Virus record (IMG/VR): IMGVR_UViG_3300046092_000062
Location: 124,001 to 188,000 of that record
Strand: one strand, 5' to 3'
Length of the DNA: 64,000 nt
Under the pieces are notes generated by a model. It did no database searches, had not been told where the DNA came from, and worked only from the letters and a program-made list of their open reading frames with translations. Positions 4,613 through 63,462 of the stretch are shown one piece after another (the first letter of the stretch is position 1; the number at the start of each line of letters is the position of its first letter). The position numbers were made by a program, and so were the translations under genes.

Positions 4613-4621
4613 GGAAACAAC

Positions 4622-25748: not shown

Positions 25749-26639
25749 ATGAAATTAATTCTAGCCTCAATGGTGTTGTTTGCAAGTTCTGTGTTTGCAC
25801 AACCAGTTAAAATAGTCGTACAGTACCAAGCCGGTGGGGTCACTGACCGTGTGGCTAGAACTGTCCAAACAGCCTTAGAAGATAACGGCATCGCCACAGT
25901 TGTGGAATACAGGTTAGGTGGCGGTGGATTCATTGCCTATAACTATCTTGCAAAATATCAAGGCAACGAAACAGTTATTATGGCCGCAAGTAACGGGCTA
26001 ACAGATGGCATTGGTACTGCAACACAAATTGATTATGAGCTTAACGACTTTGTTGTAGTAAAGCATCTAGGTACTGTGCCTTCAATGTTGGTAGTTAATA
26101 CTTCGCACCCTGCTAAAACGTTTAAGCAACTGGTTGATATTGCGCAAACTCGACAGGTTACTTATGGTCATAGCGGAGTAGGGTCTGGCACCCACGTTGC
26201 AGGCGCTATTGTTGGTAATCGCCGGGGTAATTTTGTTGGAATTCCCTACAAGGGCCAATCCCAGGCAATTGTGGATGTGCTAGGTGGCCAAATTGATTAC
26301 ATCATGGAAGCCGACACTGTACTTGACCAGCACATTAAAGCAGGCAAAGTACGACCGCTTGTGGTTATGTCAGCCGAACGACTGCCTTCGTATCCTGATG
26401 TGCCAACACTTCGTGAATTGAGAGTTAGTGATCTTGGGTACACTCGATGGTCTATATTGGTTGCAAATAAAAACGCCAACCCAGAACTGTTGCAGAAGAT
26501 CAGAAAGATCATTGACCAACCAGAAACAATGGCCAAATTAGCAGAGCTAGGGCAACGGCCAGCAAAAACAGTACCGCACCAGTTAGAAGTTCTAGCAACT
26601 CAGTTCCAGAAAATTCGCCAACAAGTTAATCTCGATTGA
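25749..26639 (+). CDS. Bug/TctC tripartite tricarboxylate transporter substrate-binding protein
   Basis: Signal peptide, AGGVTD..AR, GSGTH, PYKG, DVLGGQID, PDVPTL.E. Confidence 0.9.
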   Translation: MKLILASMVLFASSVFAQPVKIVVQYQAGGVTDRVARTVQTALEDNGIATVVEYRLGGGGFIAYNYLAKYQGNETVIMAASNGLTDGIGTATQIDYELNDFVVVKHLGTVPSMLVVNTSHPAKTFKQLVDIAQTRQVTYGHSGVGSGTHVAGAIVGNRRGNFVGIPYKGQSQAIVDVLGGQIDYIMEADTVLDQHIKAGKVRPLVVMSAERLPSYPDVPTLRELRVSDLGYTRWSILVANKNANPELLQKIRKIIDQPETMAKLAELGQRPAKTVPHQLEVLATQFQKIRQQVNLD

Positions 26640-29970: not shown

Positions 29971-30510
29971 ATGCGTATTACAGAAGTTAGCCTGCCTAAA
30001 AATCTATGGGAATTAGTTGTATCCAATGCCGATAAGCAAGAGCTTGGGGACAATTTAATTGATCTAGTTAACAACGCCTACGGTTCTACTGCACACGGCA
30101 GTTTCGTTACTAGCATTAGAGATGTTATTCCAAGCGACTGGAACGTCATTGACTGGGATGAAGATCCTGAAGTTGATGCGTGTGTATTTTATCGTGGACC
30201 TAGGGCAAACGAGCAATGGGTTGGGTATAAGATCCAAGGCATCGGGCACGATGGGCAAAAACAAAGCAAAGACCGTGTGATAAACAAAGTGACTCAGTTG
30301 CTTAACAAGCCAGGTTTCTGGATTGAAAGTAGTGATGCTATGCGAGCAACCCTAAAGCGTTTACCAGTACCAATGGTAGACAGCGAACACTTGCTGAAGT
30401 TCTTATTCAATGATCCGCATCTAAAGATGGTTGACCATGGAACCTACCAACGCAAGCTACAAAGCGGCATGGCAATTGAAACAGTATTCGGAAATCCACG
30501 AATAACCTAA
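29971..30510 (+). CDS. late protein with MRITE leader (possibly GNAT-like)
   Basis: TATAAATA at 29959-66 just before ATG. Confidence 0.65.
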   Translation: MRITEVSLPKNLWELVVSNADKQELGDNLIDLVNNAYGSTAHGSFVTSIRDVIPSDWNVIDWDEDPEVDACVFYRGPRANEQWVGYKIQGIGHDGQKQSKDRVINKVTQLLNKPGFWIESSDAMRATLKRLPVPMVDSEHLLKFLFNDPHLKMVDHGTYQRKLQSGMAIETVFGNPRIT

Positions 30511-34085: not shown

Positions 34086-34476
34086 CTTTTGGTTCTGGGC
34101 CAAGCCAGCGTGTGTCACGCATAACTGTGCGTAACTGAAACTTGTTCTTGCCCATCTTAATAAACGGGATATTCAAATTAGTGTGCGGATCATAGAATAC
34201 TAAGTTAGTACCGTCAGGCTTTGCTCTGAACAAATGCAAGCCTCTATTAATGATTCGACCAAATGTGTCAATTAACATACCAGGCTCGATCCTACTCATA
34301 CCACGTTTAGCCAGTAACTGATCAAAGAAATGGTCTTTAATATCTAATCGTATGCCAATATGATTTGCATAGTCTTGCACAGCCTTAATCGATAGGTACA
34401 ACGAGCGAGTGCGCTCTTCTGTGTAATAGGGATCTTGCGGCCAATCGCTATGCTCAAGTAATTCTTTTATTTTCAT
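34072..34476 (-). CDS. late protein with MKIKE leader, putative RNase-like domain
   Basis: HFFDQ...R...I, D..TNLNIPF, RTVMR. Confidence 0.55.
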   Translation of the reverse strand: MKIKELLEHSDWPQDPYYTEERTRSLYLSIKAVQDYANHIGIRLDIKDHFFDQLLAKRGMSRIEPGMLIDTFGRIINRGLHLFRAKPDGTNLVFYDPHTNLNIPFIKMGKNKFQLRTVMRDTRWLGPEPKVTLN

Positions 34477-35171
34477 ATGGTTCCTAGTACGTCGTGATAC
34501 CAAGGGTCAATGATAACTGGCGTACCATCTGCACGTTGCATAACGTTTTCTGTATGCAAGTCCCATCCCCAACCTTTATGTGCGCCTAGTCTAGCTAGAA
34601 TGACCATAGTAATGTACAGGGCTTCGTAGTAGCTTTGCTTACGATGGTCCATGAACTCGTTATGCACTAGTTCCGGAACATCAGGATCGCCGCCCCAGTA
34701 ACGCCAGAGATCACTTTCAGTCATGAAGTCATCTAATACCTCTTGCCATCTGAGTTGACGGGCAGCACACTCACTCATAATCCAAACAATACCTTGTAGC
34801 GCAGTACCAGCTGGAATAGGTTGCAAGCGTTCCATGGCAATTTGTCTAAACTGTTCGCCGTCGATCTCGAAACGTGTATGGTGTTGCCCTTGAATCTTAA
34901 CAAATCTTGGCAAGAATGGATTTGGCTTGCTAGTGGTTACGTATTGATAAAAGTCCAGGAATGTCTTTTCACCTGTACTTAACTGTCCACTCTCTGGCAT
35001 AAGGATTTTAATCACAGTGTGAGCGTCTTTTGCATAGACTGAAGCGTCTGCGCCTGCGCCCAACTCAGTATATCCCGCAGCCTTCATTACTTGCTCAATC
35101 TTGTCACGGTGATCACTAGTGATTAATTCATCAAGTACTTGGGCTTCTGTTAAAATTTCGTTTATTTTCAT
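34473..35171 (-). CDS. Ser/Thr protein kinase-like protein with MKINE leader
   Basis: LGAGADASVY Gly loop, VIKI, MERL, DLHTENVM catalytic loop, IIDP. Confidence 0.8.
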   Translation of the reverse strand: MKINEILTEAQVLDELITSDHRDKIEQVMKAAGYTELGAGADASVYAKDAHTVIKILMPESGQLSTGEKTFLDFYQYVTTSKPNPFLPRFVKIQGQHHTRFEIDGEQFRQIAMERLQPIPAGTALQGIVWIMSECAARQLRWQEVLDDFMTESDLWRYWGGDPDVPELVHNEFMDHRKQSYYEALYITMVILARLGAHKGWGWDLHTENVMQRADGTPVIIDPWYHDVLGTI

Positions 35172-36325
35172 CGCATGTTCATCGCTACAGTGTACTCTTT
35201 GAAGTTGTGCAAGCGATCTTGCAGTCCTCTGAGCGCAGGGTTAATATATTTAGTGACCGTGGCAGTGTCATTGAAGTTGTGTACGTTAGGTCTAACGCGA
35301 GTTTGCCAATACCACACTGCAATCTTGGCAGCAATTTCTGGGTTAGCAGCAAGCTCTGGCTTTTGCTCTAACGGCAACCCTAACGCTTTTCCTGCCATGC
35401 GATAGTTGTCGCGTCCGGTGATTTGAATAAAGCCACGACCGTGATACCTAACTCCGTCCCCTGCATGTGTATTGCCCAAGGTCTTAGCCATACCCGGTGC
35501 AGCCTTGGGGTCGTAACGCTTGTGGAAGTACTTGGCGCCGCCGATCTCCTTCATTCGTGTAAAATCTGCACTTTCGTGACGTGTTTGTGCCATGAATTGT
35601 GCTAGTTCTGCCCCTTTAATGCCTGCTCTGATAGCAGTACGTTGTAGAGTATGCTCGGGCCCCATATTCATACTCACCCCAAATGTGTCTGGTTGTGCTA
35701 CTTTTGGAGTTGCTACTTTAGGTTGTGCAGCTTTGGCTACATGGTGTGCTGTTGCCTTAGGTTGTGCATGTGGCGCAGATTTAGCATCAGCTGCGCCACC
35801 ACCTAACGCCATGCCCGCAGCAAGTGCGCCAGTAGCAGCCCAGTCTTTCCATCCCTCTTCAAGATCTTGTGCAGAATAAATGGCATCTAGTGCATCGTCT
35901 AGCTGTCGCAACGGAATTCCTGCGTTGTTGTATCCGCGTTCCAATCGAGCAATATACGCATCGTTTGGTTCTGTGCCTTGCATGTACTCACGAGTCTCCG
36001 GAGTCATTGTATAGATCTCTGCTTCGTGGCGCTTTCCATTGGCAAATACTGGAACTGTTTTGCGATCGTATAAACTTGGGTAGCCCTCTGTTTGGTCCAG
36101 TTGAGCAAGTAGCTGTCTATCGATTGCCCACAAGCTACCAATTACTCTAGCTCCGGGATATGGAAATACGTTGGCATAAGTGAACATTTCAAACACAAAG
36201 TTCTTTAGCTCTGCACGACTAACAAATTCTGCACCGGGCATCAGTTCTGGGTCTGTTAACATGCCGTAGGCAAAATAGTATATAGGGGCCGCGCCAGCTT
36301 CGTCTAGTACATCTGTGATTTTCAT
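35168..36325 (-). CDS. gamma-glutamylcyclotransferase (AIG2-like) fused to a GH19 lysozyme/chitinase
   Basis: YFAYG, LDQTEGYP..Y (GGCT); FMAQTRHES, YHGRGFIQITGRDNY (GH19). Confidence 0.85.
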   Translation of the reverse strand: MKITDVLDEAGAAPIYYFAYGMLTDPELMPGAEFVSRAELKNFVFEMFTYANVFPYPGARVIGSLWAIDRQLLAQLDQTEGYPSLYDRKTVPVFANGKRHEAEIYTMTPETREYMQGTEPNDAYIARLERGYNNAGIPLRQLDDALDAIYSAQDLEEGWKDWAATGALAAGMALGGGAADAKSAPHAQPKATAHHVAKAAQPKVATPKVAQPDTFGVSMNMGPEHTLQRTAIRAGIKGAELAQFMAQTRHESADFTRMKEIGGAKYFHKRYDPKAAPGMAKTLGNTHAGDGVRYHGRGFIQITGRDNYRMAGKALGLPLEQKPELAANPEIAAKIAVWYWQTRVRPNVHNFNDTATVTKYINPALRGLQDRLHNFKEYTVAMNMR

Positions 36326-36332
36326 ACTGTAT

Positions 36333-37454
36333 TTAGTAAGCCAATATACGGTTTAAGTTCTGCAAGTCTGCAGGGTTGTAGGGAATGTTGCACTCAGTTA
36401 ATGCGCTACCTAGTTTGTCTGTTAACTCGTTTACTACCAGTGGACGCATGGTAGTATAAAAGTGGTTAAAGTTGTATTCTAATATTTCAGCCATTGCTAA
36501 TTTCATTTGCACCAGTTCTTCGTGCGTTTTATTACATAGATCTTCAAGTATAGCTAGCACCGCATCAAAGCGATCGGCACTGTTAGTAATAGTGTCGTAT
36601 CCCTCGTCCCAGAATTCCCCAAAGGTACGAAAGCCATACTTGCGCAAGTACGCCAAATTGCCAGCGCCAGCTAACAACAAAAAGGGCATCTTAGCCACAA
36701 TCGGCTTAAAGATCTTTTCAGTTAGATGTTGTTTATTTTCGTAGAAGATGGTTTCAGTAACTAGATTTACAAATGCCTTTTGCATATCCGCAACATTGAC
36801 CGCTGCACTAAGCTCTCCGCGTGGGTCGCTGGTGTCTATTATCATCTGCTTTTCAAGCAGGTGCATATGAGATCGAATGTTTGTTTTGTGAGGTTCTGGT
36901 AGCCATTGGTACGAGTTAGTAGAAGCCTCAATACTTTTAACATCAGCTGTATTGTAACTCACATATCCTTTCCCTACTAGATCTCTTTTCTGCAATTCGA
37001 TTACCAAGTTGGCGCGGTACAAACGTTTGTCTAATGTTAGATTGTTATAAGTAATATATGTGCGTTCAAAATCGGTATTGACATTTATGTTGTCGTACCA
37101 ATGCAATCTATACCATTCGTGACACAACAGTGCGTGATAAAAATACTGGACATCTTTCAAATTGTAATCATTACACAGTTTGTCGCTTTCTGTGCTATAC
37201 TCACTGGTTACTAGTACCCGACAAGCTGAAAAAGATTGAGAATACGATCTATAGAGTTCAATGTAAAATTTAGTAACGTCTATAGGTTCTTGGTCATAAA
37301 AAATAACAGTAGGTTTAAGTACAATCGGATAAGACGTCGATTTTGAAACAAAGTATATACGATTTTGATTAAACACAGGACACAATAACGCAATGCCCGA
37401 TTTATCAAAAAAGTGATCTCTCATTACATTATAGAAAAAATCAAAAGGAATCAT
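36333..37454 (-). CDS. putative glycosyltransferase-like protein
   Basis: LVTET, TEKIFKPI, GFRTF..FWDE.YD; paralogue of 43074-44165. Confidence 0.55.
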   Translation of the reverse strand: MIPFDFFYNVMRDHFFDKSGIALLCPVFNQNRIYFVSKSTSYPIVLKPTVIFYDQEPIDVTKFYIELYRSYSQSFSACRVLVTSEYSTESDKLCNDYNLKDVQYFYHALLCHEWYRLHWYDNINVNTDFERTYITYNNLTLDKRLYRANLVIELQKRDLVGKGYVSYNTADVKSIEASTNSYQWLPEPHKTNIRSHMHLLEKQMIIDTSDPRGELSAAVNVADMQKAFVNLVTETIFYENKQHLTEKIFKPIVAKMPFLLLAGAGNLAYLRKYGFRTFGEFWDEGYDTITNSADRFDAVLAILEDLCNKTHEELVQMKLAMAEILEYNFNHFYTTMRPLVVNELTDKLGSALTECNIPYNPADLQNLNRILAY

Positions 37455-38693
37455 ATGTTAAGCAAGAAAATTGGATTTATTGGAATTGGCAAGTTAGGGA
37501 TGGCGTGCGCCGAAGTGATGGCCGAAAAGCATTCTGTTACCGGCTATGATATTTACCCCAAAACCAGCAACAAGATCAAAATTGTCAACCAACTTAAAGA
37601 TGCTGTACTCGGTCAAGACATTATTTTTGTTGCAGTACAAACACCACATGATGCTAAGTATGGCGGCGCCAGCCCAATTGCACATTTGCCTAACGTAGAC
37701 TTTAACTACGATGTAGTTGAGCATGTGCTTAAACAGATTAACTGTTGGGCAAGACCAAATCAAATGGTTGTGTTAATTAGCACAGTACTACCAGGAACAG
37801 TGCGTGGACGATTGCGCCAACACATTACTAATCCACGTTTCATTTACAACCCTTACTTAATTGCAATGGGCAGTGTGGAGTGGGATATGGTTAATCCTGA
37901 GATGGTTATCATTGGAACAGAGGACGGCGATGTTACAACTGATGCAGCAGAGCTAATTGAGTTTTATAAAGGACTGATGCAAAACAATCCACGTTACGAA
38001 GTTGGTACATGGGACGAAGCGGAATGTATTAAGGTGTTTTACAACACATTCATTAGTGCCAAGATCGGATTAGCTAACATGATCCAGGACGTTGCTATCA
38101 AGCAAGGCAATATTAATGTGGATGTCGTGACTGATGCACTAGCAAGATCTAGTATGCGAATCATGGGGCCAAAATACATGACAGCAGGAATGGGTGATGC
38201 CGGACCTTGCCACCCACGTGACAACATTGCATTACGTTACATGGCAGAGAAGTTGGATCTAGGGTACGACCTGTTTGATGCTATTATGAATGCACGAGAA
38301 ATTCAAGCACGTAACCTAGCTAAGTTTATCGCTGACGAAGCCAACAATGCGTTGCTGCCAGTTTATATTCACGGCAAAGCATACAAGCCGGACGTGGACT
38401 ACTTAGAAGGCAGCTATAGTTTGCTAGTTGGACATTTTCTAAAACAGGATTTTGGCATCACACCGCACTATGTTGATCCACTAACAGAAGAACTTAATCC
38501 CAAATCTGTTAAGGGCGTTGTGCTACTTGCACACAATAGAAAAATCACATACGGGTATGCGGGCGAAGAGAACGAGCAGGAACTCTACTGCAAACTTAAC
38601 GAAGGTAGTATTGTAGTTGACCCATGGCGTCAATACGCTACTGCTCGCACCGACATCAAGGTCATCCACTATGGCAATACACGCAAAGTATAA
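37455..38693 (+). CDS. ugd: UDP-glucose/GDP-mannose 6-dehydrogenase
   Basis: GIGKLG, AVQTP, STVLPG, AE.IK..YN, GPCHPRD. Confidence 0.9.
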   Translation: MLSKKIGFIGIGKLGMACAEVMAEKHSVTGYDIYPKTSNKIKIVNQLKDAVLGQDIIFVAVQTPHDAKYGGASPIAHLPNVDFNYDVVEHVLKQINCWARPNQMVVLISTVLPGTVRGRLRQHITNPRFIYNPYLIAMGSVEWDMVNPEMVIIGTEDGDVTTDAAELIEFYKGLMQNNPRYEVGTWDEAECIKVFYNTFISAKIGLANMIQDVAIKQGNINVDVVTDALARSSMRIMGPKYMTAGMGDAGPCHPRDNIALRYMAEKLDLGYDLFDAIMNAREIQARNLAKFIADEANNALLPVYIHGKAYKPDVDYLEGSYSLLVGHFLKQDFGITPHYVDPLTEELNPKSVKGVVLLAHNRKITYGYAGEENEQELYCKLNEGSIVVDPWRQYATARTDIKVIHYGNTRKV

Positions 38694-42097: not shown

Positions 42098-43105
42098 ATG
42101 ACTACACCACGAATTGGGTTTGCCTGTAAGTTTAGTGAACTTACCCCTAAAGGCATTGAAAGTGTTCCGGAATTAAATACACGCGGCACTACTGTGGCGT
42201 GGCTAAATAGACAGAGCAAGCATATTGCAGAGGAACGTCTCTGGGATATCATGAAGCACAACATCGAATCGGCAAAACTGCTGGTAGAAAAAGTAGGAAC
42301 CCTTGAACAACATCTCAGAATGGTGCGCCTTAGCAGCGACCTTCTTCCTGTATATACCGAGCCTTCTTGGAGTTATTTTTGGCGTCAGCCTGACGTTAGG
42401 GCTTATTGCGAAAAACACTTTGCGCAGGTTGGCGCTGTTGCTCGTTGCAGCAATGTGCGTCTTAGTTTTCACCCAGGTCAATTCTGCGTTCTCGCAAGCG
42501 ATTCTGGAGATGTTGTTGAACGCTCAATCCTTGAGTTCGAATACCATGCTGATATGACCCGTTGGATGGGCTATGGACAAAAATTTCAAGACTTCAAAAT
42601 CAACGTACACATATCGGGACGCAAGGGTCCGCAGGGCATTAGAGATGTATATGGCCGTCTATCGCCTGAAGCACGTAACTGTCTAACACTAGAGAACGAG
42701 GAATACACACATGGTTTGGACGATTGTTTGTCTTTACACGATCTTGTACCTACTGTGCTCGATATTCATCATCACTGGATCCGAGAAGGTGAGTACATTG
42801 ATGCGGGCAGCGATCGTGTTAAGGCAGTTGTTGATAGCTGGCGCGGCGTGCGCCCTACTTTACACTACAGTGTTTCACGAGAAGATGTCCTTGTCGGGCA
42901 CTGTGCGAACACCTTGCCCGATCACCCAGCGTTGCTTGTAAGCGGTTACAAAAAGCAAAAACTTCGTGCTCACAGTGACTACTACTGGAACAATGCAGTT
43001 AACGAGTGGGCTGCTACGTTTACTAAAGACTTTGATGTCATGTGCGAGAGCAAGGCCAAGAACCTTGCTAGCATTAAGTTCGCGACAGTAGCTCTTCAAT
43101 CTTAG
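42098..43105 (+). CDS. uvsE: UV damage endonuclease
   Basis: RIGFAC, RLSSD, HPGQF, LENEE, DIHHH, RAHSD, ESKAK; promoter 42064-42092. Confidence 0.93.
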   Translation: MTTPRIGFACKFSELTPKGIESVPELNTRGTTVAWLNRQSKHIAEERLWDIMKHNIESAKLLVEKVGTLEQHLRMVRLSSDLLPVYTEPSWSYFWRQPDVRAYCEKHFAQVGAVARCSNVRLSFHPGQFCVLASDSGDVVERSILEFEYHADMTRWMGYGQKFQDFKINVHISGRKGPQGIRDVYGRLSPEARNCLTLENEEYTHGLDDCLSLHDLVPTVLDIHHHWIREGEYIDAGSDRVKAVVDSWRGVRPTLHYSVSREDVLVGHCANTLPDHPALLVSGYKKQKLRAHSDYYWNNAVNEWAATFTKDFDVMCESKAKNLASIKFATVALQS

Positions 43106-48796: not shown

Positions 48797-49420
48797 ATGC
48801 CTAACTTTGTACCTACCGTACTCGAAAAAACTGCCAACGGCGAACGTGCTTACGACATCTATAGTCGTTTGCTTAAAGATCGTATTGTCATGTTGGACAC
48901 GGATGTTAGCGAGCATTCCGCTAGTCTCGTTATTGCACAAATGCTCTTTTTAGAAAGTGAAGATCCCAATGCAGACATCCTCTTTTACATCAACTCACCC
49001 GGCGGTCTCGTCACTGCTGGCCTGGCAATCTATGATACTATGCAGTTCATTAAGCCTGATGTTTCTACCATTGTACTTGGCCAAGCCTGCTCTATGGGAA
49101 GTTTCCTTGCCAACGCAGGAGCCCCGGGCAAACGACTAGTATTGCCAGAATCACGTACAATGATTCACCGTGTTAGCTCGGGCACTCCTAGCACACGTGG
49201 TAGCGTACACGTTCAAGAACTGCAATTTGAAGATGCTAAACGCAGCTTTGAAGAAAGCCAACGCTTGAATCAACGCCTTACTGAGCTGTACATCCGTCAC
49301 AACACTGCGGGCAAAACATACGACGAAATGTTTGCTACTATGAAGTTTGACACATTCCTGTCTGCACAAGAAGCAGTGGAAATGGGTCTTGCTGATGAAG
49401 TGATCTCTAAACGTCCATAA
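48797..49420 (+). CDS. clpP: ATP-dependent Clp protease proteolytic subunit
   Basis: DIYSRLLKDRI, YINSPGG, GQACSMG, MIH, D.FLSA.EA...GL.D. Confidence 0.96.
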   Translation: MPNFVPTVLEKTANGERAYDIYSRLLKDRIVMLDTDVSEHSASLVIAQMLFLESEDPNADILFYINSPGGLVTAGLAIYDTMQFIKPDVSTIVLGQACSMGSFLANAGAPGKRLVLPESRTMIHRVSSGTPSTRGSVHVQELQFEDAKRSFEESQRLNQRLTELYIRHNTAGKTYDEMFATMKFDTFLSAQEAVEMGLADEVISKRP

Positions 49421-50042: not shown

Positions 50043-50606
50043 ATGATCACTTACCGAATTCTATCTGCGCCTGAGTTACCAAAATACGCTATGTTTCTAA
50101 AACAGCGTAATTCCGATTCCCTTAACCTTTATTTCGGACACGCTATGCGCCACGAAATGATTGATCATTTAATGGACGGAATGATTGCAGATGCACACTT
50201 GCACAATATTGTGGTAGCAGAAGATATTGATCAAGAAATTGTGGGCACTGTGCATATTGCACGTATGAGCGACCACGAAGTAGAGTTTGGTGTAATGGTA
50301 GCAGAAGCATATCGCAGCAAGGGCATTGCTAGTGGTATGATGGATTATGCTATGACATGGGCACAAAATAGAGGTTTTAGAGACCTTTACATGCACTGTT
50401 TGAGCTATAATGCACCCATCAAGCACCTTGTTACCAAGCACGGACTCGCTATCAGCAGAGACGGAATCGAAAGCGATGCCCGTGTTACTATGCCTCCTAC
50501 TAACATCTTTAGTATTGGGCACGAAATTGCCCTGCGCCAACAGAACGCAGTTAACACAACTCTTAACCACACAATTCAAAGTTTTCGTCGAGCGCTAGCG
50601 TTATAA
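50043..50606 (+). CDS. GNAT acetyltransferase
   Basis: EFGVMVAEAYRSKGIAS (motif A), CLSYN. Confidence 0.88.
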   Translation: MITYRILSAPELPKYAMFLKQRNSDSLNLYFGHAMRHEMIDHLMDGMIADAHLHNIVVAEDIDQEIVGTVHIARMSDHEVEFGVMVAEAYRSKGIASGMMDYAMTWAQNRGFRDLYMHCLSYNAPIKHLVTKHGLAISRDGIESDARVTMPPTNIFSIGHEIALRQQNAVNTTLNHTIQSFRRALAL

Positions 50607-50616: not shown

Positions 50617-51534
50617 GTGAAAACATTTGAATTAAACAACTCTTACTCAGATCGCCCTGTTGTCTATGTAGATATGGACGGTGTCCTTGCGGACATGTTC
50701 GGCGAAGCTGCCCGTCGTGAAGGTGCAACGCATTGGCGTAGAGCACGTAAAGAAAAAGACTGCATTGATCAAGTCGCACAAGAACCTGGATTCTTCGCTG
50801 AATTGCCAGCATTACCACAAGCAGGTAAACTGCTACATGGTGTGCTGAAATTAGCCGGTGAGTACAGTATCTTATCTGCTCCGCTAATGAGCGATGTGGA
50901 ACAAAGCAGTAGAGAAAAAGCTGACTGGATTGATCGCAAGCTATCTAGAATCCCTCCCGAAAGCATTATCTTTGATCACCAAAAGGAAAAGTTTGCTAGA
51001 CAAGCAGATGGTACTCCTAACATCTTAATTGATGATTGGGATAGCAATATCAAGCTATGGGAAGCCAATGGCGGCATTGGTATCTTGTACAAAGATGGCG
51101 AGTGTGAGCGGGCTTTAAAGAAACTGCACTATGCACTAGAGGGCTTGATCCCTGCTAGTGAAGTAGAAGACGAAGATGTTGACCTAAGCGTAGAAAACAA
51201 ACTCTACACCAATCAGCAGGTGCTCAAGTATGTTAAAGGCATACATAATGAATATCATTTAGAAAAGCCAATTCTGCGACACAAGGTGTGGGTGCTTAAA
51301 GAAGTCCCACTAAGTGAGTTGCAGACTCCAGAGTTCTACGATCAAGACGATCCTTACCGCAGAGTAATCGACTTGGACTGGGACCACATCAACAATGTTA
51401 CAACCCGTGATATTTTAAAGAAGCCCGTAGTTGCAGACAGCAACGGGTGGTTACTAGATGGCAACCATAGGGTTACAGCCGCTAGAGCCAAGGGCTTGCA
51501 AAGCATCCGAGCATTAGTTCCGTACCAAGATTAA
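50617..51534 (+). CDS. HAD 5'(3')-nucleotidase fused to a ParB/Srx-like domain
   Basis: DMDGVLAD, LIDD (HAD); LDGNHRV.A (ParB-like); acidic linker. Confidence 0.85.
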   Translation: MKTFELNNSYSDRPVVYVDMDGVLADMFGEAARREGATHWRRARKEKDCIDQVAQEPGFFAELPALPQAGKLLHGVLKLAGEYSILSAPLMSDVEQSSREKADWIDRKLSRIPPESIIFDHQKEKFARQADGTPNILIDDWDSNIKLWEANGGIGILYKDGECERALKKLHYALEGLIPASEVEDEDVDLSVENKLYTNQQVLKYVKGIHNEYHLEKPILRHKVWVLKEVPLSELQTPEFYDQDDPYRRVIDLDWDHINNVTTRDILKKPVVADSNGWLLDGNHRVTAARAKGLQSIRALVPYQD

Positions 51535-51567
51535 TAGTGCGTATAAATACCTAATACAGGTATTTTT

Positions 51568-54027
51568 ATGCGCTATAAACAAATCAAAACATTAACAGAA
51601 CAAACATTATTTGAAGTCAATATGAGCCCAGGCAGCTTGCGTAAACTCGCAAGTCAGATCAATGCCAAGGCTGGTATGGAATTTGAAATGATTGTTCCTA
51701 ACGTCAAAATTGATGGTGAAGAAGATTTTGAATCGGAACCCGACTACGAACATGACCCACGCACACGCAGCATCAGCGACATTCGTGATTTCTTCCACGA
51801 TGGTGATCATAACGGACGCCGTGCAGTTGATGAGCTAGTAGAAGAATTAGAACAAGAATTCTACGAGTGGCGCCAAACGAAAATTGACGAAGAATGGGCC
51901 AGTGACGGTTACGAGTTCTTTTCCCAATGGGTTAGAGAAAACGTCAGCGACGATGAATGGCTAACCGGCGATGATGAAGACGACGAAAATGAAGCGTTTT
52001 CCAAATATATAGATCGCGAATGGGAATCACAAGACCGTGCTTACACAGAAGCATACAATGAATTTGTTTCTGACCACGAAGACGATTGGGATAGCGGCGA
52101 TTGGTTGAATGCAGTTGATTATGACTACATGACCGACATTGCCAACAACTTTGATATCAGCTGGCCTTATTGGACAGAATATCAAGGGGACGATGATAAC
52201 ATGGATGTAGAGAAGGTTGCTGATGATTTTAGCAACGCAATCGGTCGTCCAGTTAATCACAGTACCAGCTACCATGGCGCACGCCGAGAAGAAGGCACAT
52301 ACGTAGTCGAACCCGATGGCAGCTTAGAAGGTGACGATAGCGATGATGGTGGTTTAGAATTTGTTAGCCCACCATTGCCTATTGCAGAATTGCTAAGTGA
52401 CTTGCAGAAAGTTAAACGTTGGGCCAAGCGTAGAGGTTGCTATACAGGTAGCGATTACGGCACAGGCCTGCACATTAACGTATCAGTTGATGGTTGGAAA
52501 GGGCTTGAGAGTTTAGACTACGTTAAGCTAGCAATCTTACTTGGCGACGAGTACGTGCTAAAGCAATTTGAACGACAAAGCAATACCTATTGCAAGAGTG
52601 CGTTGGGACTAGTTAAAAACGCAATCAAGCAGAATCCTCTAAGTGCCAAAGAGCTGCTAGAGAAGATGAAGAACCACATGAACACTGCGGCCAGCAAGTT
52701 GATCCACAGTGGTATCACCAACAAGTTTACTAGTATCAACACCAAAGACGGTTACGTAGAGTTCCGCAGTCCGGGCGGTGATTGGTTAGATGAATTTGAA
52801 GACAAAATTGAACCTACGCTACTACGCTTTGTGGTTGCATTGGATGCAGCAGTACACGAAGACAAGTACAAACAAGAATACCAAAAGAAGTTGTATAAAC
52901 TACTAGAGCCAAGCATGGACGAATATGGTGCAATGGTTAAAGACTTCAGTGACTACGTAAGTGGTGTCGGTGGTGCTCCTGAACAAGTTGTTAAAGACTT
53001 TAGACGTGCAGCATTGTCTAAACTGCAACAAAGTAACGTAGGCAAGAAGTCACAGCGCAATGAAGGCAACTGGGGCTTGTGGGCAAAAGTTCCTAACAGA
53101 TTCGCCGCATTGAGTACAGACAAGGACAGTGCGTTACGTAGATTTAAATCTAAAGAGGACGGTGAGGCATGGATGGCTAGTCATGGGCTAAAGCCAGAAC
53201 GTTTTGACGTTTTAGAAATCCCAGCTGATTATGTACCCTCTGAGCGAAATGTCAATACGTTCCAAGAGCCAACTGCTAACCGCGGCGACTTAGTTCCACG
53301 TGGTCCGGGTCCATGGGAAATTTACAGAATAAGCGATGGTAGCAGTGTAAGAGCATTAGATCAAACTAACCGCAACGGAGCTGAAACCGAAGCGAGAACT
53401 GCATTAGGGTTGCGTGCCGAAGCTCCTGAGTTATACGGAGTACGTACTCGCCAATCAGCACAACAGCCAAATTGGGAAATTCGAAACGCAAGTACCAATG
53501 GTTTAGTGGATCAGTTTTATGCACCCGACCAGAATACGGCCATTGGCATACAGTTTGATTACTTACAAGATCAAGGACTAGATTCAAATGATTACGTGCT
53601 TCAAGCTATCGAGCAACCTAGTGCAGCACAAGTAGCACAACAGTCGCACAATGCTCATCAAGCAGCAAACATGCAAGAGTGGACTATCTTAAATGGCCAG
53701 GGCGCAGTGATGGGCAGAGTGCAAGCTGCCACACAAGGTGAGGCTAATCAACGTGCAGCCGGATTCCTTGGCAGACACCATCCCAACATGATGGGGCAAG
53801 AAGTTGAGGTAGTACCGACCGCGGCGCACAATGCTAGACAACAAAGTCAAGCACAGCCTCAGCGATTTGAAATCTACAAACGAAGCACAGGTCAACCTGC
53901 TGTTGAATTAACTAGCACTAATCAACAAGATGCATGGCTCGAAGCACAAGAGATGTTTAGAACTCGTTATGCCGCTTACGACCCAGCTGAATATAGCGTT
54001 AGAGCTGTAACTCCATCTATCCCGTAA
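51568..54027 (+). CDS. putative amidoligase (COOH-NH2 ligase type 2) with C-terminal repeats
   Basis: GMEFE, EPDGSL, LEFVSPP, TGLHINVS, VEFRSPGG. Confidence 0.8.
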   Translation: MRYKQIKTLTEQTLFEVNMSPGSLRKLASQINAKAGMEFEMIVPNVKIDGEEDFESEPDYEHDPRTRSISDIRDFFHDGDHNGRRAVDELVEELEQEFYEWRQTKIDEEWASDGYEFFSQWVRENVSDDEWLTGDDEDDENEAFSKYIDREWESQDRAYTEAYNEFVSDHEDDWDSGDWLNAVDYDYMTDIANNFDISWPYWTEYQGDDDNMDVEKVADDFSNAIGRPVNHSTSYHGARREEGTYVVEPDGSLEGDDSDDGGLEFVSPPLPIAELLSDLQKVKRWAKRRGCYTGSDYGTGLHINVSVDGWKGLESLDYVKLAILLGDEYVLKQFERQSNTYCKSALGLVKNAIKQNPLSAKELLEKMKNHMNTAASKLIHSGITNKFTSINTKDGYVEFRSPGGDWLDEFEDKIEPTLLRFVVALDAAVHEDKYKQEYQKKLYKLLEPSMDEYGAMVKDFSDYVSGVGGAPEQVVKDFRRAALSKLQQSNVGKKSQRNEGNWGLWAKVPNRFAALSTDKDSALRRFKSKEDGEAWMASHGLKPERFDVLEIPADYVPSERNVNTFQEPTANRGDLVPRGPGPWEIYRISDGSSVRALDQTNRNGAETEARTALGLRAEAPELYGVRTRQSAQQPNWEIRNASTNGLVDQFYAPDQNTAIGIQFDYLQDQGLDSNDYVLQAIEQPSAAQVAQQSHNAHQAANMQEWTILNGQGAVMGRVQAATQGEANQRAAGFLGRHHPNMMGQEVEVVPTAAHNARQQSQAQPQRFEIYKRSTGQPAVELTSTNQQDAWLEAQEMFRTRYAAYDPAEYSVRAVTPSIP

Positions 54028-54033: not shown

Positions 54034-54057
54034 AAACCCGCTTCGGCGGGTTTCTCT
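54034..54057 (+). terminator. intrinsic terminator
   Basis: AAACCCGC-TTCG-GCGGGTTT. Confidence 0.85.
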
Positions 54058-54091
54058 TGACCAAAAACTATTTTGGGCGTATAATATCTAT

Positions 54092-54322
54092 ATGAAAAAA
54101 TTAAACGTCAACGATATCATGCAGTGGACTGGTACACTCTGCTTCATGGCCATGTACACTTTGATGTCAATGAACATCTACCCATGGAACATTGTAGCAG
54201 GACTTAGCGGTAGTACTTGCTACTTAATATGGTGTCTGCGTGTTGTAAATAAGCCACAGATGGTTGTTAACGCAGTGGGCATCATTGTGTGCCTAGTTGG
54301 TCTAGTTAAGGCTTTTGGTTGA
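54092..54322 (+). CDS. small 3-TM membrane protein
   Basis: Hydrophobic; YPWN, VVN; promoter 54057-54085. Confidence 0.7.
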   Translation: MKKLNVNDIMQWTGTLCFMAMYTLMSMNIYPWNIVAGLSGSTCYLIWCLRVVNKPQMVVNAVGIIVCLVGLVKAFG

Positions 54323-54377
54323 CCCGAAATGGATTTCTTGCTATAATAATGGCATAGTAAGTAAAAAGGAGTTAGCA

Positions 54378-54803
54378 ATGAAAAACTGGACCGATTCGTG
54401 CATTAACTGGCATCAACTCTCTGGTACCGAAGTCAAGCGTTTGCTTGATACTTGGGGCATGACTGAGCGTCAAATTGCTAACTACGATGTCAAGCATGGG
54501 TATGCAACTGCACCCAAAGCAGAACCAGCTACTAAGAAAGTAGTAGAAAAGGCTCCTGCTAAAAAGACAGCAGAGGCCAAGCCCGCAGCAAAGGCGCCGG
54601 CTAAAACTCCTGCTAAGAAAACTGCTACAAAAGTAGTACAAAAAGCTGCCACCCGTCAAAAGCACACCGGTGCAGATGGCGAAATCAAGTTCCTGGATCA
54701 CCGTGATCTCTATGTGGGATTTTGGGGCGGGCGTGTTGTAGTTACCAAGCGTACCGAAGCTCAGTGCCGTGCGTACTTGACTGCGAACCACGGCACAGAA
54801 TAA
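54378..54803 (+). CDS. early protein with K/A/P-rich linker
   Basis: Promoter 54319-54347; AAGGAG RBS. Confidence 0.7.
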   Translation: MKNWTDSCINWHQLSGTEVKRLLDTWGMTERQIANYDVKHGYATAPKAEPATKKVVEKAPAKKTAEAKPAAKAPAKTPAKKTATKVVQKAATRQKHTGADGEIKFLDHRDLYVGFWGGRVVVTKRTEAQCRAYLTANHGTE

Positions 54804-54866
54804 ATGGTTGACCCGAAATGAATTTTCGGGTATAATAGCTACATAGCAAACAAAACAGGAGTTAGC

Positions 54867-55193
54867 ATGTTAACGATGTCACTTGAAACTAAAGAATCGA
54901 ATAACAAGTTTTTCGCATTGCAAGATCGTCGTATGCGCAATCATGCAAACAAAACCCTGTATACGACAGCCCAGCAAATTCGCTTGGACCGCATTAAGCT
55001 CGCACTCGAGATGGTGCTCCACGGTACTGTTTACGAGCCATCGTATGGTAAGAAAAGTGCCAGTGTTAAAGTGCAAGACGGTGCCCTAATTGCAGATCGC
55101 AAAACACTGCGATTGCTTGAAGAAGACTGGTCAAAGGAAGGCATCTTTAAGAAAGTGTCTGCCCAAGGCTTTCAATACCACGTGCCACGCTAA
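54867..55193 (+). CDS. hypothetical early protein
   Basis: Promoter 54808-54836; AGGAG RBS. Confidence 0.7.
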   Translation: MLTMSLETKESNNKFFALQDRRMRNHANKTLYTTAQQIRLDRIKLALEMVLHGTVYEPSYGKKSASVKVQDGALIADRKTLRLLEEDWSKEGIFKKVSAQGFQYHVPR

Positions 55194-55258
55194 TTTCGGT
55201 TGACCCGAAATGGTTTTGGTTGTATAATATACACATAGTAAGAAACAAAGGAACTGAA

Positions 55259-55534
55259 ATGCAAGCTGTTGAAATCGCCCGTGCAATTATTGCTAGCAAC
55301 TACACTAACGACGAACTGAATAACATCAGTGATGCAATCCGTTTTGTACGTGCGCAAATGATTCACAAGAATACAGGCAGCTTGGTTATCGGTACCAAGG
55401 TTAAGTTTACACATCCTAAAACCCGTGCAGTGCATTACGGTGTGGTTAAGAAAGTTAAGATCAAGAACGTGACTGTTCTGGAAAACGGTACACTGAACTG
55501 GAACGTTCCGGCTAACATGCTGGAGGCAGCATAA
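55259..55534 (+). CDS. hypothetical early protein (SH3-like C-terminus)
   Basis: Promoter 55200-55228; W.VPA.ML. Confidence 0.7.
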   Translation: MQAVEIARAIIASNYTNDELNNISDAIRFVRAQMIHKNTGSLVIGTKVKFTHPKTRAVHYGVVKKVKIKNVTVLENGTLNWNVPANMLEAA

Positions 55535-55607
55535 TGCTTGAAAAGGTAAGTGCGTTCTTGCTTGGTGTGTTTATTGGTATGAACATTATTGTTTGGGGGT
55601 TTATGGT

Positions 55608-55823
55608 ATGATGGAAATGCGTTGACTTAAACGCCCAATTGGAAACAAACTTAGCGGAACAAAAATTGTCACCGTTTACGAACGTGTGCTGCAATACCGC
55701 CAAATGGAAGACAAGACAGTTTATGCGCAGGCAAATGCCTTGTCGCAAGACTTTATCGCCCGAGGTCATCGCAACATGCAATGGTCTGAGTGGACTGACA
55801 TTCGTGAAGTTGTAGAGGAGTAA
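55608..55823 (+). pseudogene. small ORF interrupted by TGA at codon 6
   Basis: MMEMR*LKR...ERVLQYRQ...WSEWTDI; TGA at 55623-25. Confidence 0.5.
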
Positions 55824-55825
55824 TC

Positions 55826-55954
55826 ATGCGTAATTTAGCAATTGGCTTTGTTCTTGGTTTGGTTGTGGCCACTGTTGGCTTTAGCGGTGTTGCAAGGATT
55901 CTGGATAAGAGCATCGACTCCGTCAAGACTCACAGCAAGGAATTGGCTCAGTAA
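55826..55954 (+). CDS. small membrane peptide (42 aa)
   Basis: GAGGAG RBS; GFVLGLVVATVGFSG. Confidence 0.6.
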   Translation: MRNLAIGFVLGLVVATVGFSGVARILDKSIDSVKTHSKELAQ

Positions 55955-56077
55955 AATGGGCAAAAAGAATTTAAATTGTGGTTGACTCATTATTCGAAAT
56001 CAACTATAATTTAAATACTGTAGCAATGAGGCTACATTGAGAGTGTGTTTTTCAATTAACGTAAATGGAGTTTACAA

Positions 56078-57265: not shown

Positions 57266-58234
57266 ATGAAAAAATTCTTTTGTCCTGCACCGTGGCGATC
57301 TTTGTTCTACCATGTTGATCAATCGGCTGTGTGCTGCATTAGTTCTAAGAAGTTTAGCATGAGTCCAATAGAGTTTAGAAATAGCGACTACCTTAAAGAT
57401 TTAAAAACTAAATTTTTAAATAACGAGTTCGACGAAACTTGCAGTGGATGCAAGTCTCTAGAAGACGCAGGGCTGCAAAGTATAAGACAGCACCTACTCG
57501 CACTATACAGTGAGACCACAGTTGACCAACTCGATTATATGGAGCTGCGAGCAAGCAATCTTTGTAATTTTCAGTGCAAGATGTGCAATAGTGAAAACAG
57601 CTCTCTTATCAGTGGCTCAGTTAATACCGTCTTAGATTCTGACTGGGACGAAATACTTACTATGTCAGAGAATCTAAAGTTCCTTACATTAACTGGCGGC
57701 GAGCCAATGATAATTAAGCACTACTACCAGTTACTGGATCACTTGATAGCTAAAGACAAAACAGACATTAACTTGCGAGTCTACACCAATGCAAGTGTGT
57801 ATAATCACATATTCGTTGAGAAGCTGCTGAAATTTAATACAACATTAAACCTCAGTGTTGACGGAGTAGGAAGAACAGCAGAACTACAACGCACAGGCAC
57901 AGTCTGGTCTACAGTACAAGATAACATTACCAAGTTTGTGGCTTTACCGATTCAGATAAAATTTCATACCACTCTCACAAACATCTCGATCGTTGACATA
58001 CACTCGTTGGCCAAGTACTTTGTCGAGATAGTTGAAAATAATCCCCACTGCACCTTTGTTGCACATACTGCCAACAGTCCCAAATACCTATCCATTTACA
58101 ATCTAGCGCCTGCATTGTTTAACACCGCATTACGTAGCATCGAATCTGCACTAGGCATTCTAGTGCATCCACAATTTGCACAACTCAGAGAGCAGTTGGT
58201 TGCACATCAATCACTAATCAAAAGCAAACAATAA
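57266..58234 (+). CDS. radical SAM protein with N-terminal Cys (twitch/SPASM-like) domain
   Basis: CNFQCKMC, GGEP, TNAS, SVDG; FCPAPW, CC, C..C. Confidence 0.88.
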   Translation: MKKFFCPAPWRSLFYHVDQSAVCCISSKKFSMSPIEFRNSDYLKDLKTKFLNNEFDETCSGCKSLEDAGLQSIRQHLLALYSETTVDQLDYMELRASNLCNFQCKMCNSENSSLISGSVNTVLDSDWDEILTMSENLKFLTLTGGEPMIIKHYYQLLDHLIAKDKTDINLRVYTNASVYNHIFVEKLLKFNTTLNLSVDGVGRTAELQRTGTVWSTVQDNITKFVALPIQIKFHTTLTNISIVDIHSLAKYFVEIVENNPHCTFVAHTANSPKYLSIYNLAPALFNTALRSIESALGILVHPQFAQLREQLVAHQSLIKSKQ

Positions 58235-60483: not shown

Positions 60484-61500
60484 ATGAAAAAATACAATAC
60501 ACTGGTCTTGATTGGTCGCTTTCAACCCTTCCACAATGCTCACTTGGAAATTATCAAACGCAGCACTGCACTCTGCGACAAGCTGATTGTGATTACAGGT
60601 AGCGCAGCTCAACCCCGTACTTACAAGAACCCCTTCACTAGTGCCGAACGAGCACAAATGATTAAAGCCGCAACTGGCGGACTTGCATTGCAAATTGTCA
60701 TTGAAGAAAACATTGACACCATGTACAACGACCAAGCCTGGGCAGTTCGTGTTCAAGGTATTGTGCAACGCAATACAAAAGCTGGTGAGAAAATTGCTAT
60801 CATTGGACACAAGAAAGACGACAGCAGCTTTTATCTCGATATGTTCCCACAGTGGGGCTACGAGAACGTAGAAGAAATTGCACCACTCAGTGCAGTTAAC
60901 ATTCGCGATTTGTACTTCAAGCGTGATTGCAACATGGAATTCATCCGTGGTGTAGTGCCCCGTACTACTTTTGATTTCTTGACACAATTCAAAGAAACAC
61001 CAGAGTACGAACAAATCATTCGTGAACGTGAGTTCTTGATTGAACACGCCAAGCAATATGCTGGTCTCAAATATCCTCCAATCTTTAGCACAGCTGATGC
61101 CGCAGTGATTTGTTCGGGCCATGTGCTTATGATCAAACGCCGTGCTGAACCTGGACGTGGCTTGTGGGCACTGCCCGGCGGTTACGTTAACGCCAGCACT
61201 GACAAGACTGTACTGGATGCAGCTATTCGCGAACTCCGCGAAGAAACTGGTATCAAAGTACCCGAGCCAGTGTTGCGTGGCAGCATTACAGGCAACCGAG
61301 TGTTTGATGCAGTGGATCGCAGTCCACGTGGTCGTATCATCACCCACGCCTTTAAAATTGAATTGCCTGATGGTGCATTGCCTAAAGTAAAAGGCAGCGA
61401 CGATGCTGAAAAAGCACGTTGGGTTCCTATTGCAGAAGTGCGCAGCGATGAGTGTTTCGAAGATCACTACGATATGGTCCAGTGGGCTGTGGGTGTTTAA
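60484..61500 (+). CDS. nadM: bifunctional NMN adenylyltransferase / ADP-ribose pyrophosphatase (NadM-Nudix)
   Basis: GRFQPFHNAH, KNPF, SA..IR; Nudix box PGG...RELREETG, SDDA. Confidence 0.95.
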   Translation: MKKYNTLVLIGRFQPFHNAHLEIIKRSTALCDKLIVITGSAAQPRTYKNPFTSAERAQMIKAATGGLALQIVIEENIDTMYNDQAWAVRVQGIVQRNTKAGEKIAIIGHKKDDSSFYLDMFPQWGYENVEEIAPLSAVNIRDLYFKRDCNMEFIRGVVPRTTFDFLTQFKETPEYEQIIREREFLIEHAKQYAGLKYPPIFSTADAAVICSGHVLMIKRRAEPGRGLWALPGGYVNASTDKTVLDAAIRELREETGIKVPEPVLRGSITGNRVFDAVDRSPRGRIITHAFKIELPDGALPKVKGSDDAEKARWVPIAEVRSDECFEDHYDMVQWAVGV

Positions 61501-62058: not shown

Positions 62059-63462
62059 ATGAAACTCTCTAAAAACATCATTCTCAACACCGACAGCTAC
62101 AAAGTGTCAATGGGCCGCCAATACCCAGCTGGCACTACCAATGTATTCAGCTACATTGCAGCACGTGGTGGTAAATTCACATTCACGCAGTTTGTTGGAC
62201 TGCAAATGTTCATCAAGGAGTATTTGCTTGAACAAATCACCAAAGAAGACATCGACATTGCAGAAGAAATCCTCACAGCGCACGGCGAGCCATTTGACCG
62301 CAGCATGTGGGACTACATTGTCGAAGCACACAACGGCTACTTGCCAGTGGTCATTAAAGCCGTACCAGAAGGCACTGTTGTGCCAGTTGGCAACGCATTA
62401 GTCACAATCGAAAACACTGACCCCAAGTGCCACGGTTTAACTACTTGGTTGGAAACTCCATTGCTTCGCGCAGTGTGGTACCCAACTACAGTCTCAACAC
62501 AAAGCAAGTACATTAAAAACATCTTGCAAGAATACTTGGAGAAATCAGGTGATCCTGCTTCTATCGGTTTTAAACTGCACGATTTTGGTGCTCGTGGTGT
62601 ATCTTCAATGGAGAGTGCTGGTATTGGGGGTGCAGCCCACTTGGTCAACTTCATGGGCACGGACACTATTACTGGTGTTCTTTACGCTCGTGAATATTAC
62701 AATGCTGGTATTGCTGGATTTAGCATTCCTGCAGCCGAACACAGTACTATCACTAGTTGGGGTCGCGCAGGCGAACTGAACGCTTACAGCAACATGGTTA
62801 CACAGTTTGGCAAGCCAGGCGGCATTGTTGCAGTTGTGTCTGACAGCTATAACATCTACGAAGCATGTAAAATGTGGAGCACTGGTGCGCTGAAACAGCA
62901 AGTGATTGATTCAGGTGCCACAGTTGTTATCCGTCCTGACTCAGGTGATCCTGTTGACGTGATGCCAAAGATGATTGCAATTCTTGCAGAAGGTTTTGGT
63001 TACACTACAAACGACAAGGGCTACAAAGTTCTCAACAATGTGCGTATGATCTGGGGTGATGGTATTAACCCATTGTCAATCCAAAGCATCTTGCGCACAA
63101 TGGTTGACGTGGGTGGTTGGAGTGCAGACAACTTTGCGTTTGGTATGGGCGGTGCTTTGTTGCAAGCAATTGATCGTGATACACAAAAATGGGCTATGAA
63201 ATGCTCAAGTGCATGTATCGATGGTGAATGGGTTGATGTTTACAAAGACCCAATCACTGACAGCGGCAAAGCTTCACTCAAAGGTCGTGTCAAGTTGTGG
63301 ACCAACAGTGGTGGCGAGTTTGCGACAAGTGTGCAAGCCCCTACTGGTTGGAGCGACAAGGGCATCGGTGGTTGGGTTGATGCAATGAAAACTGTCTACA
63401 TGGATGGTGCATTGTTTAACGAAATCACCTTTGAAGAAGTTCGTGCTAACAGCATGAAATAA
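62059..63462 (+). CDS. nadV: nicotinamide phosphoribosyltransferase (NAMPT)
   Basis: TDSYK, LHDFGARG, PAAEHS, VSDSY, RPDSGDP, GDG, FGMGG.L. Confidence 0.96.
   Translation: MKLSKNIILNTDSYKVSMGRQYPAGTTNVFSYIAARGGKFTFTQFVGLQMFIKEYLLEQITKEDIDIAEEILTAHGEPFDRSMWDYIVEAHNGYLPVVIKAVPEGTVVPVGNALVTIENTDPKCHGLTTWLETPLLRAVWYPTTVSTQSKYIKNILQEYLEKSGDPASIGFKLHDFGARGVSSMESAGIGGAAHLVNFMGTDTITGVLYAREYYNAGIAGFSIPAAEHSTITSWGRAGELNAYSNMVTQFGKPGGIVAVVSDSYNIYEACKMWSTGALKQQVIDSGATVVIRPDSGDPVDVMPKMIAILAEGFGYTTNDKGYKVLNNVRMIWGDGINPLSIQSILRTMVDVGGWSADNFAFGMGGALLQAIDRDTQKWAMKCSSACIDGEWVDVYKDPITDSGKASLKGRVKLWTNSGGEFATSVQAPTGWSDKGIGGWVDAMKTVYMDGALFNEITFEEVRANSMK

Follow-up and report, generated by a model that had tools for sequence, protein, structure and literature searches.

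A late-type phage amidoligase gene with an acidic insert and five C-terminal repeats, and its possible place in a polyvalent-type effector network

The 64,000-bp stretch of DNA analysed here (hereafter the window) comprises bases 124001-188000 of the 320,767-bp IMG/VR virus record IMGVR_UViG_3300046092_000062, which is 92% complete by CheckV. Its central feature is a single open reading frame (ORF) on the forward strand (51568..54027), whose 819-aa product, P0001, carries an amidoligase domain, an acidic insert and five C-terminal repeats, an architecture read from the letters alone in an earlier note on this DNA and borne out by a Pfam match, the isoelectric point (pI) of the insert, profile searches and an AlphaFold model. 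P0001 belongs to a very large, uncharacterised phage ligase family and is short for a member; its homologues comprise more than 2290 proteins at 90% clustering, which have in common the ~470 N-terminal residues at ~50% identity, and 256 viral contigs encode one. As far as seen, the family is confined to T4-related jumbo phages. The same sequence recurs in several independent freshwater metagenomes, contigs of four sequencing runs place the ligase gene in independent freshwater samples, and relatives come from wastewater; an RNA library holds pieces of related sequence, short of proving transcription. The sole matches in cultured phages are those of Agrobacterium phage Atu_ph07 and Ralstonia phage RsoM2USA, at 28-32% identity over at most one third of the protein, and synteny around the ligase is poorly kept past the two closest relatives.

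Residues 212-405 of P0001 match Pfam Amidoligase_2 (PF12224) at E 4.8e-11, with 43.4 bits against a gathering cut-off of 22, and in a genome-wide scan P0001 was the only PF12224 gene in 320,767 bp (45.7 bits). The catalytic domain opens with strand beta1 (aa 33-43, GMEFEM; 51664..51702), modelled as a strand and containing the invariant G36, E38 and E40, and continues beyond the insert as a core of aa 216-470 (52213..52977), to which the PF12224 match, invariant residues and Foldseek together assign a glutamine synthetase (GS)- or GCS2-like fold. Invariance is here judged from an alignment of 60 homologues (A1), in which the motifs GxExE, EPDGSL (E248, D250), GLEFVSPP (E264), GLHINVS (H302, N304) and EFRSPGG (R400) are all invariant, and with them the GS-like active-site acidic, His and Arg residues (E38, E40, E248, D250, E264, H302, N304, R400), which by analogy may bind metal and ATP. 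The AlphaFold2 model of the ligase has a mean predicted local distance difference test score (pLDDT) of 74. Against the PDB, Foldseek placed GS, YbdK (1r8g, 1tt4) and Dop in the top rows, with 8fbp and 7oxv also among the best entries, at E 5e-3 to 5e-2 and template modelling (TM) scores of ~0.2; a sequence search of the PDB found no chain matching the ligase. GS, YbdK/GCS2 and PafA/Dop are thus the best structural matches of the core, weak yet consistent ones, and the chemistry to be expected from them is activation of a carboxylate by ATP followed by attack of an amine. Relative to its closest relative the core is 96% identical, with a ratio of nonsynonymous to synonymous substitution rates (dN/dS) of 0.02. 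Together, the PF12224 match, invariant motifs, low core dN/dS and GS/YbdK/Dop fold matches indicate that the enzyme is intact and apparently active, and the family to which it belongs points to ATP-dependent carboxylate-amine ligation as its likely chemistry. Literature searches found no characterised member of Amidoligase_2.

The acidic insert (aa 46-215; 51703..52212) sits between strand beta1 and the remaining core, and holds 58 Asp and Glu against 12 Lys and Arg residues, giving a pI of 4.05 and a charge of approximately -46. A canonical 315-aa PF12224 protein lacks it, and has some 65 residues ahead of the position that 244 precede in P0001. AlphaFold2 places confident helices at residues 84-125, 140-154 and 157-173 (pLDDT 85-96), six positions are invariant among the 60 homologues (D59, F75, A162, L180, W199 and P200), and dN/dS is 0.11; as modelled, therefore, the insert is not disordered filler. 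A likeness between aa 88-168 (51829-52071) and the anti-CRISPR AcrIIC5 (8jb9_A, 8hj4_C) was set aside as probably compositional (E ~0.2).

The C-terminal part of P0001 consists of ~55-residue modules whose five motifs start at aa 501, 582, 635, 704 and 766. Repeat 1 (GNWGLW type; aa 499-557, 53062..53238) is followed by repeat 2 (PGPWEIYR type; aa 573-631, 53284..53460), repeat 3 (NWEIR type; aa 632-686, 53461..53625), repeat 4 (EWTIL type, the C-terminal type in most homologues; aa 695-753, 53650..53826) and repeat 5 (RFEIY type; aa 757-817, 53836..54018). With nothing but the final 62 residues of 101 homologues as input, a profile matched repeat 4 from the start (aa 695-753; independent E-value, i-E, 1.3e-10), and at its second iteration, with the window's own repeats 2 and 3 not yet added, recovered repeat 2 (573-631; i-E 2e-5) and repeat 3 (624-684; i-E 2.5e-5); repeat 5 was matched at i-E 2.4e-15. 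Repeat 1 was missed by every profile and is seen in the structure model only. AlphaFold2 modelling of aa 478-819 (mean pLDDT 75) returned five beta-beta-alpha-beta units, at residues 502-550, 583-627, 636-680, 703-750 and 766-814. Thus four repeats are found by profile and all five by model, and the strand-strand-helix pattern with a terminal (Y/F/V)x(V/L) strand, which the earlier note had described for each repeat, recurs in all five modelled units.

This module is a previously undescribed, unassigned domain family. Its profile matches 554 representatives at 50% clustering, with no standalone copy among proteins of 36-115 aa, and matches of 140-446 aa proved to be contig-end fragments or split genes; the rest of the genome holds no further copy. 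A PDB sequence search with the repeat profile gave nothing significant, and the model of all five repeats had no Foldseek match in the PDB under E 0.07; an atlas searched by features gave no usable match, and by shape only the family itself and one weak PaaB row. The PaaB fold (PF06243) and the small phage inhibitor folds of T7 Gp2, AcrIF9 and AcrIE2 are listed among the closest comparisons. An identity with YegP/DUF1508, suggested by the JGI name of one homologue (P0086), was rejected, as the repeats have no Pfam match up to E 10 and hhalign gave 0.3% probability against Escherichia coli YegP.

The repeat types, including that of repeat 1, are each conserved as orthologs among homologues, that of repeat 2 being best kept across the family, and copy number by profile ranges from 1 to 5 in 120 homologues, with an extra unit in one close relative. 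Repeats 2 and 3 (53284-53625) are only 56% and 63% identical to those of the closest relative (L004/L005), versus 93-97% in the flanks and 97% in repeat 4, and dS there is raised to 1.5-1.8. This combination of low local identity, against 96-97% in the core and repeat 4, with raised dS suggests that repeats 2-3 were exchanged as a cassette, by recombinational replacement rather than point divergence. Metagenome contigs of two other samples have a gap exactly at repeats 2-3, which fits cassette exchange and proves nothing.

Seventeen nucleotides upstream of the ligase ATG lies a late-promoter-like motif, ATAAATAC (51543..51550, forward strand). Within the genome the 7-mers of its general form, [ACT]TAAATA[CT], are 12-17-fold enriched in the 60 nt upstream of genes, and 62 of 91 copies lie no further than 40 nt ahead of an ORF coding for 50 aa or more. 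Genes so tagged include those for a tail sheath, tail fibre, head-tail adaptor and virion protein, as well as the ligase, an NT5C-ParB protein and a GGACT-GH19 protein (both described below), the last with CTAAATAC 3 nt upstream of its start. Among relatives, the motif precedes 20 of 61 unique ligase ORFs, where ~0.9 would be expected. The ligase gene is thus likely to be transcribed late alongside structural genes, as judged by this motif alone, and the expectation that it and the GGCT-type (here GGACT) gene are both late is upheld to that extent. The broader form was used instead of the exact T4 late promoter, TATAAATA, which occurs only 9 times in 320 kb and is not enriched. AATACAG, considered as a shared leader, is at chance level (12 observed, 11 expected).

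The gene directly upstream of the ligase (50617..51534, forward strand) encodes an NT5C deoxyribonucleotidase fused to a ParB-like domain, and upstream of this is a GNAT acetyltransferase gene (50043..50606, forward strand). ParB-like proteins are encoded within 10 kb on either side of the ligase in ~10 loci, in some directly adjacent.

P0001 starts MRYKQIKTLTE-QTLFE-V, and its leader MRYKQIKTLTEQTLFE (51568..51615), a putative propeptide or capsid-targeting signal, has LxE twice (LTE, aa 9-11; LFE, aa 14-16). All 60 homologues keep E16 and M19, and at least 90% keep L14, although the leader itself is modelled as disordered (pLDDT 34-48); the motif [LI]xE-[IV]xM also recurs at an internal junction of long fusion proteins. 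The genome encodes a gp21-type prohead protease (PF03420, E 5.6e-27; G000:862-1314), and at least eight of its ORFs start MK-I-T/N-E/D-I/V-I/L-x-E, including the GGACT-GH19 gene, its downstream neighbour and a GNAT+DUF6934 protein; in the window the leader-sharing ORFs are 17046-17345, 29971-30510, and, on the reverse strand, 34473-35171 and 35168-36325. A leader-like N-terminal peptide is therefore found on both the ligase and the GGACT protein, as had been proposed. The ORF at 34473-35171, directly downstream of GGACT-GH19, encodes a 232-aa protein with a sub-threshold match to Kinase-PolyVal (PF18762, E 0.004).

A precedent is found in T4, whose Alt enzyme is injected and modifies host proteins. 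In T4, an N-terminal capsid-targeting sequence of ~10 residues sends internal proteins into the head (PMC9958956), and gp21 cuts after Glu, its substrates in the head including Alt (PMC9026906). The ligase resembles Alt and the internal proteins IPI-III in having a late-type gene, a short putative leader ending in (L/I)xE and a gp21-type protease in the genome; it differs from them in enzyme class, in its leader (11-16 versus ~10 residues, and only loosely similar) and in being highly acidic. The shared leader set resembles the T4 capsid-targeting propeptide, and may mark packaged proteins. Given the gp21-type protease, the conserved LxE in a disordered N-terminus, the leader common to at least eight ORFs and the T4 precedent, packaging of the ligase in the capsid is a coherent inference rather than a result.

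The 385-aa GGACT-GH19 protein (35168..36325, reverse strand) comprises the leader MKITDVLDE, a GGACT/AIG2 domain (aa 17-139), EEGWKDW followed by a Gly/Ala-rich hydrophobic segment (aa 156-182) and a lysozyme-type GH19 domain (aa 237-349). GH19 modules at the ligase loci of relatives are 55-68% identical to that of the window; in L011, L043, L064-67 and L073 the ligase is immediately followed by the GH19 gene, and in L017 a short gap parts the two. The part ahead of GH19 is GGACT in the window, GNAT in L073, and other unassigned domains or nothing elsewhere, and this variety at the N-terminal position makes GGACT look more like an exchangeable cargo than a purpose-made eraser. EEGWKDW, a ~20-residue Gly/Ala-rich hydrophobic stretch and AxA-K precede GH19 in the window (aa 156-190; 35756-35860, reverse strand). 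The same segment occurs in L011, L017, L018, L043, L058 and L073, that is, in 6 of the 7 GH19 proteins of relatives inspected, with no evident counterpart in L067. The segment resembles a signal or signal-anchor-release (SAR)-type anchor, though often placed after a folded N-terminal domain.

In the window, the ligase and GGACT genes are 15 kb apart on opposite strands, hence neither adjacent nor in one operon, and by hand-worked coordinates their distance in relatives ranges from 3 kb to ~130 kb. One GGACT gene is present in each of 14 of 18 long related viral contigs, including 3 of 3 that are at least 90% complete, a count that stems from a single phage clade and is not phylogenetically independent. 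Seven loci have a standalone GGACT gene 3-6 kb downstream from the ligase. The two are direct neighbours only in gut phages of the unrelated Heliusvirales, where a canonical PF12224 gene adjoins one or two GGACT genes, and neither of the two cultured jumbo phages with a distant ligase, Atu_ph07 and RsoM2USA, has GGACT. The co-occurrence across phages raised in the earlier note is thus seen within one clade and in the Heliusvirales pairs, and is absent from the two cultured phages; as a tendency, the association appears real.

Canonical phage and Firmicutes amidoligases are reportedly ~315 aa long and encoded beside AIG2/GGACT genes, as Iyer et al. are said to have described in 2009. P0001 has the same catalytic domain, with a profile alignment spanning DGSL..EFVSP and GxHIN, and a GGACT gene in the same genome, which lies nearby in some relatives; it departs from the canonical form in ~180 extra acidic helical residues after beta1, the five repeats, the leader and a GGACT gene that is not adjacent. 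Relatives of P0001 are moreover polyprotein fusions, unlike the canonical form, to which similarity is weak (hhalign E 0.0019).

Among 24 long homologues surveyed for fusion domains (1011-2082 aa), 15 carry an N-terminal Pol-beta-type nucleotidyltransferase (NTP_transf_2), 6 a zincin-type metallopeptidase and 3 a dCMP-type deaminase, with ParB_N, GH19 and GNAT in one each. In many relatives the polyprotein opens with the Pol-beta nucleotidyltransferase and a zincin-like metallopeptidase, continues with the ligase and its repeats and goes on to a deaminase, ParB, GNAT or GH19; GNAT is part of the ligase polyprotein of L007/L008, a ParB-like domain of that of L058, and GH19 is joined to the ligase C-terminus in L069. 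Modules fused in these relatives are separate late-type genes here, namely GNAT and NT5C-ParB directly upstream of the ligase and GGACT-GH19 15 kb away. The giant relatives L007/L008, L034/L035, L058 and L069 (1587-2082 aa) combine nucleotidyltransferase, amidoligase and repeats with deaminase, ParB_N, DUF6934, GNAT or GH19, and a HELxH metallopeptidase-like motif lies in a conserved N-terminal extension of long homologues. Iyer et al. 2017 describe polyvalent proteins of phages and conjugative elements, which enter cells with phage or plasmid DNA and whose repertoire includes Pol-beta nucleotidyltransferase, metallopeptidase, ParB, GNAT and lysozyme domains (PMC5512222), and the ligase relatives resemble polyvalent proteins in combining those domains within 1.3-2.1 thousand residues, amid small unassigned domains (PMC5512222). 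They differ in that Pol-beta nucleotidyltransferase was there found only in conjugative elements (PMC5512222), and occurs here in phages. P0001 itself has a single catalytic domain, and thus lacks the multi-enzyme character that the long homologues have; compared with polyvalent proteins it is a reduced form, whose delivery into the host is only predicted.

We favour, tentatively and at a probability of roughly 0.45, a reading of P0001 as a late-made amide ligase of a polyvalent-type effector network, possibly packaged in the capsid and injected. Fusion of its relatives to other effector-type enzymes suggests that the ligase probably modifies a target in the host cell. Following late transcription together with the structural genes, as the motif would have it, the leader may take the ligase into the prohead, where a gp21-type protease would trim it after a conserved LxE, and delivery would occur with the DNA, as for T4 Alt and internal proteins. 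In the cytoplasm, if family chemistry is a guide, the enzyme would couple an amine, at the cost of ATP, to a carboxylate of a target from host or phage; the obvious candidate for the product is a gamma-glutamyl-type amide. The acidic helical bundle and the swappable repeats could serve as docking or spacer modules. More weakly, GGACT may be part of this effector set as well, and may reverse or use up what the ligase makes. The most elaborate form of this scheme would make P0001 the first capsid-packaged, injected ATP-dependent amide ligase. In it, a ligase brought into the head by its T4-like leader and trimmed by the prohead protease covalently amidates (gamma-glutamylates, for instance) a host defence or housekeeping protein at the next infection, with PaaB-like repeats setting the targets and the GGACT on GH19 removing or recycling the adduct; this is decidedly unlikely to be correct in full.

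Several observations weigh against the favoured reading. Matches of the ligase to known ligase folds are weak, all with E above 1e-3, and the polyvalent-protein paper mentions no amidoligase (PMC5512222). At a charge of approximately -55, the whole of P0001 would be an odd passenger beside packed DNA. Its leader is longer than that of the other tagged ORFs and less like their 9-residue consensus; LxE is expected by chance in ~14% of N-termini (estimated by hand from residue frequencies), and its conservation could simply be that of the structural element with which the domain opens. Close homologues of the ligase are missing from cultured phages.

The earlier note had cast the ligase as a writer of gamma-glutamyl-type marks on host proteins picked by the variable repeats, and GGACT as the eraser. 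Parts of this have stood: the link between ligase and GGACT extends past this genome, to 14 of 18 related contigs, the seven close loci and Heliusvirales phages; both genes carry the late motif and a leader-like peptide; the fold matches include ligases of the Dop/PafA type; and close relatives show apparent swaps of repeats 2-3. The eraser fares worse. The co-occurrence counted in related contigs falls within one clade, GGACT is missing from Atu_ph07 and RsoM2USA, each of which has a distant ligase, and the window GGACT is joined through a hydrophobic, signal-like segment to GH19, at a position taken by GNAT, another domain or nothing in relatives. The substrates of GGACT-type enzymes, further, are gamma-glutamyl compounds whose alpha-amino group is free, and the enzymes release 5-oxoproline from them, which would destroy the mark instead of regenerating the substrate as erasers usually do; overall we consider such a pair unlikely. 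The same GGACT pairing would also fit a small-molecule pathway, wherein the ligase makes a gamma-glutamyl amide or dipeptide that GGACT converts to 5-oxoproline and an amine, so that glutamate, amine or ATP is depleted or rerouted in the infected cell, or a metabolite is made. Small gamma-glutamyl compounds are the business of the GCS2/YbdK and GS families, which include the top fold matches, and metabolic genes abound in the window (ribonucleotide reductase, NAD salvage by NAMPT and NMNAT-Nudix, NT5C, UDP-glucose dehydrogenase). It is hard to see, however, why a metabolic enzyme should require five docking-like repeats, an acidic bundle of 170 residues, incorporation into metallopeptidase polyproteins or a leader with a cleavage motif, and we hold such a pathway to be just as unlikely as the pairing of writer and eraser.

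The peptidoglycan stem peptide offers a gamma-D-glutamyl bond and free carboxylates, on which, or on precursors of which, ligase, GH19 and GGACT might act together, with the repeats as wall-binding modules. GH19 is indeed the commonest immediate neighbour or fusion partner of the ligase, one relative combines the repeats with LysM and GH19, and GGACT is fused to GH19 in the window. An action on the wall nevertheless appears quite improbable, given that the ligase requires ATP and has neither signal peptide nor hydrophobic segment, whence cytoplasmic action is expected, that the repeats match no known wall-binding family, and that lysozyme domains of polyvalent proteins are read as entry tools, not pathway partners (PMC5512222). 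Even less credible is a role in nucleotide or DNA modification, in which nucleotides or modified bases would receive an amino acid or an amine from the ligase, in partnership with NT5C, ParB-like, deaminase and nucleotidyltransferase activities. To be sure, NT5C-ParB is encoded directly upstream, and dCMP-type deaminase, NTP_transf_2 and ParB_N are fused to the ligase in relatives, but polyvalent fusions mix unrelated activities, making fusion a weak sign of a shared pathway (PMC5512222), and the genes beside the ligase included none of the hydroxymethylases, kinases or glycosylases that typify base hypermodification.

The subfamily of P0001 alone numbers more than two thousand members in jumbo phages of freshwater and wastewater. 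Were P0001 delivered as an effector, amide ligation would join ADP-ribosylation, acetylation and phosphorylation among the chemistries known to reach cells with phages, and the polyvalent-protein concept would come to cover T4-related jumbo phages. The shared leader, in turn, suggests that the packaged proteins of an uncultured phage might be listed by sequence alone.

Other auxiliary genes are found throughout 287-63462 of the window. These encode a pectate-lyase/Mtd_N tail-fibre-like protein (287-1858), the large and small subunits of ribonucleotide reductase (2312-5752), ClpX (22204-23406), a TctC-type binding protein (25749-26639), UDP-glucose dehydrogenase (37413-38693), UvdE (42098-43105), ClpP (48797-49420), a radical SAM protein (57266-58234), NMNAT-Nudix (60484-61500) and NAMPT (62059-63462). 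The region right after the ligase gene (54057-56010, forward strand) contains five near-consensus sigma-70 promoters (TTGACC or TTGACT, N17, TATAAT; 11 of 12 matches), at 54057, 54319, 54808, 55200 and 55982, each ahead of a small ORF, and this cluster looks like a set of early genes read by the host polymerase.

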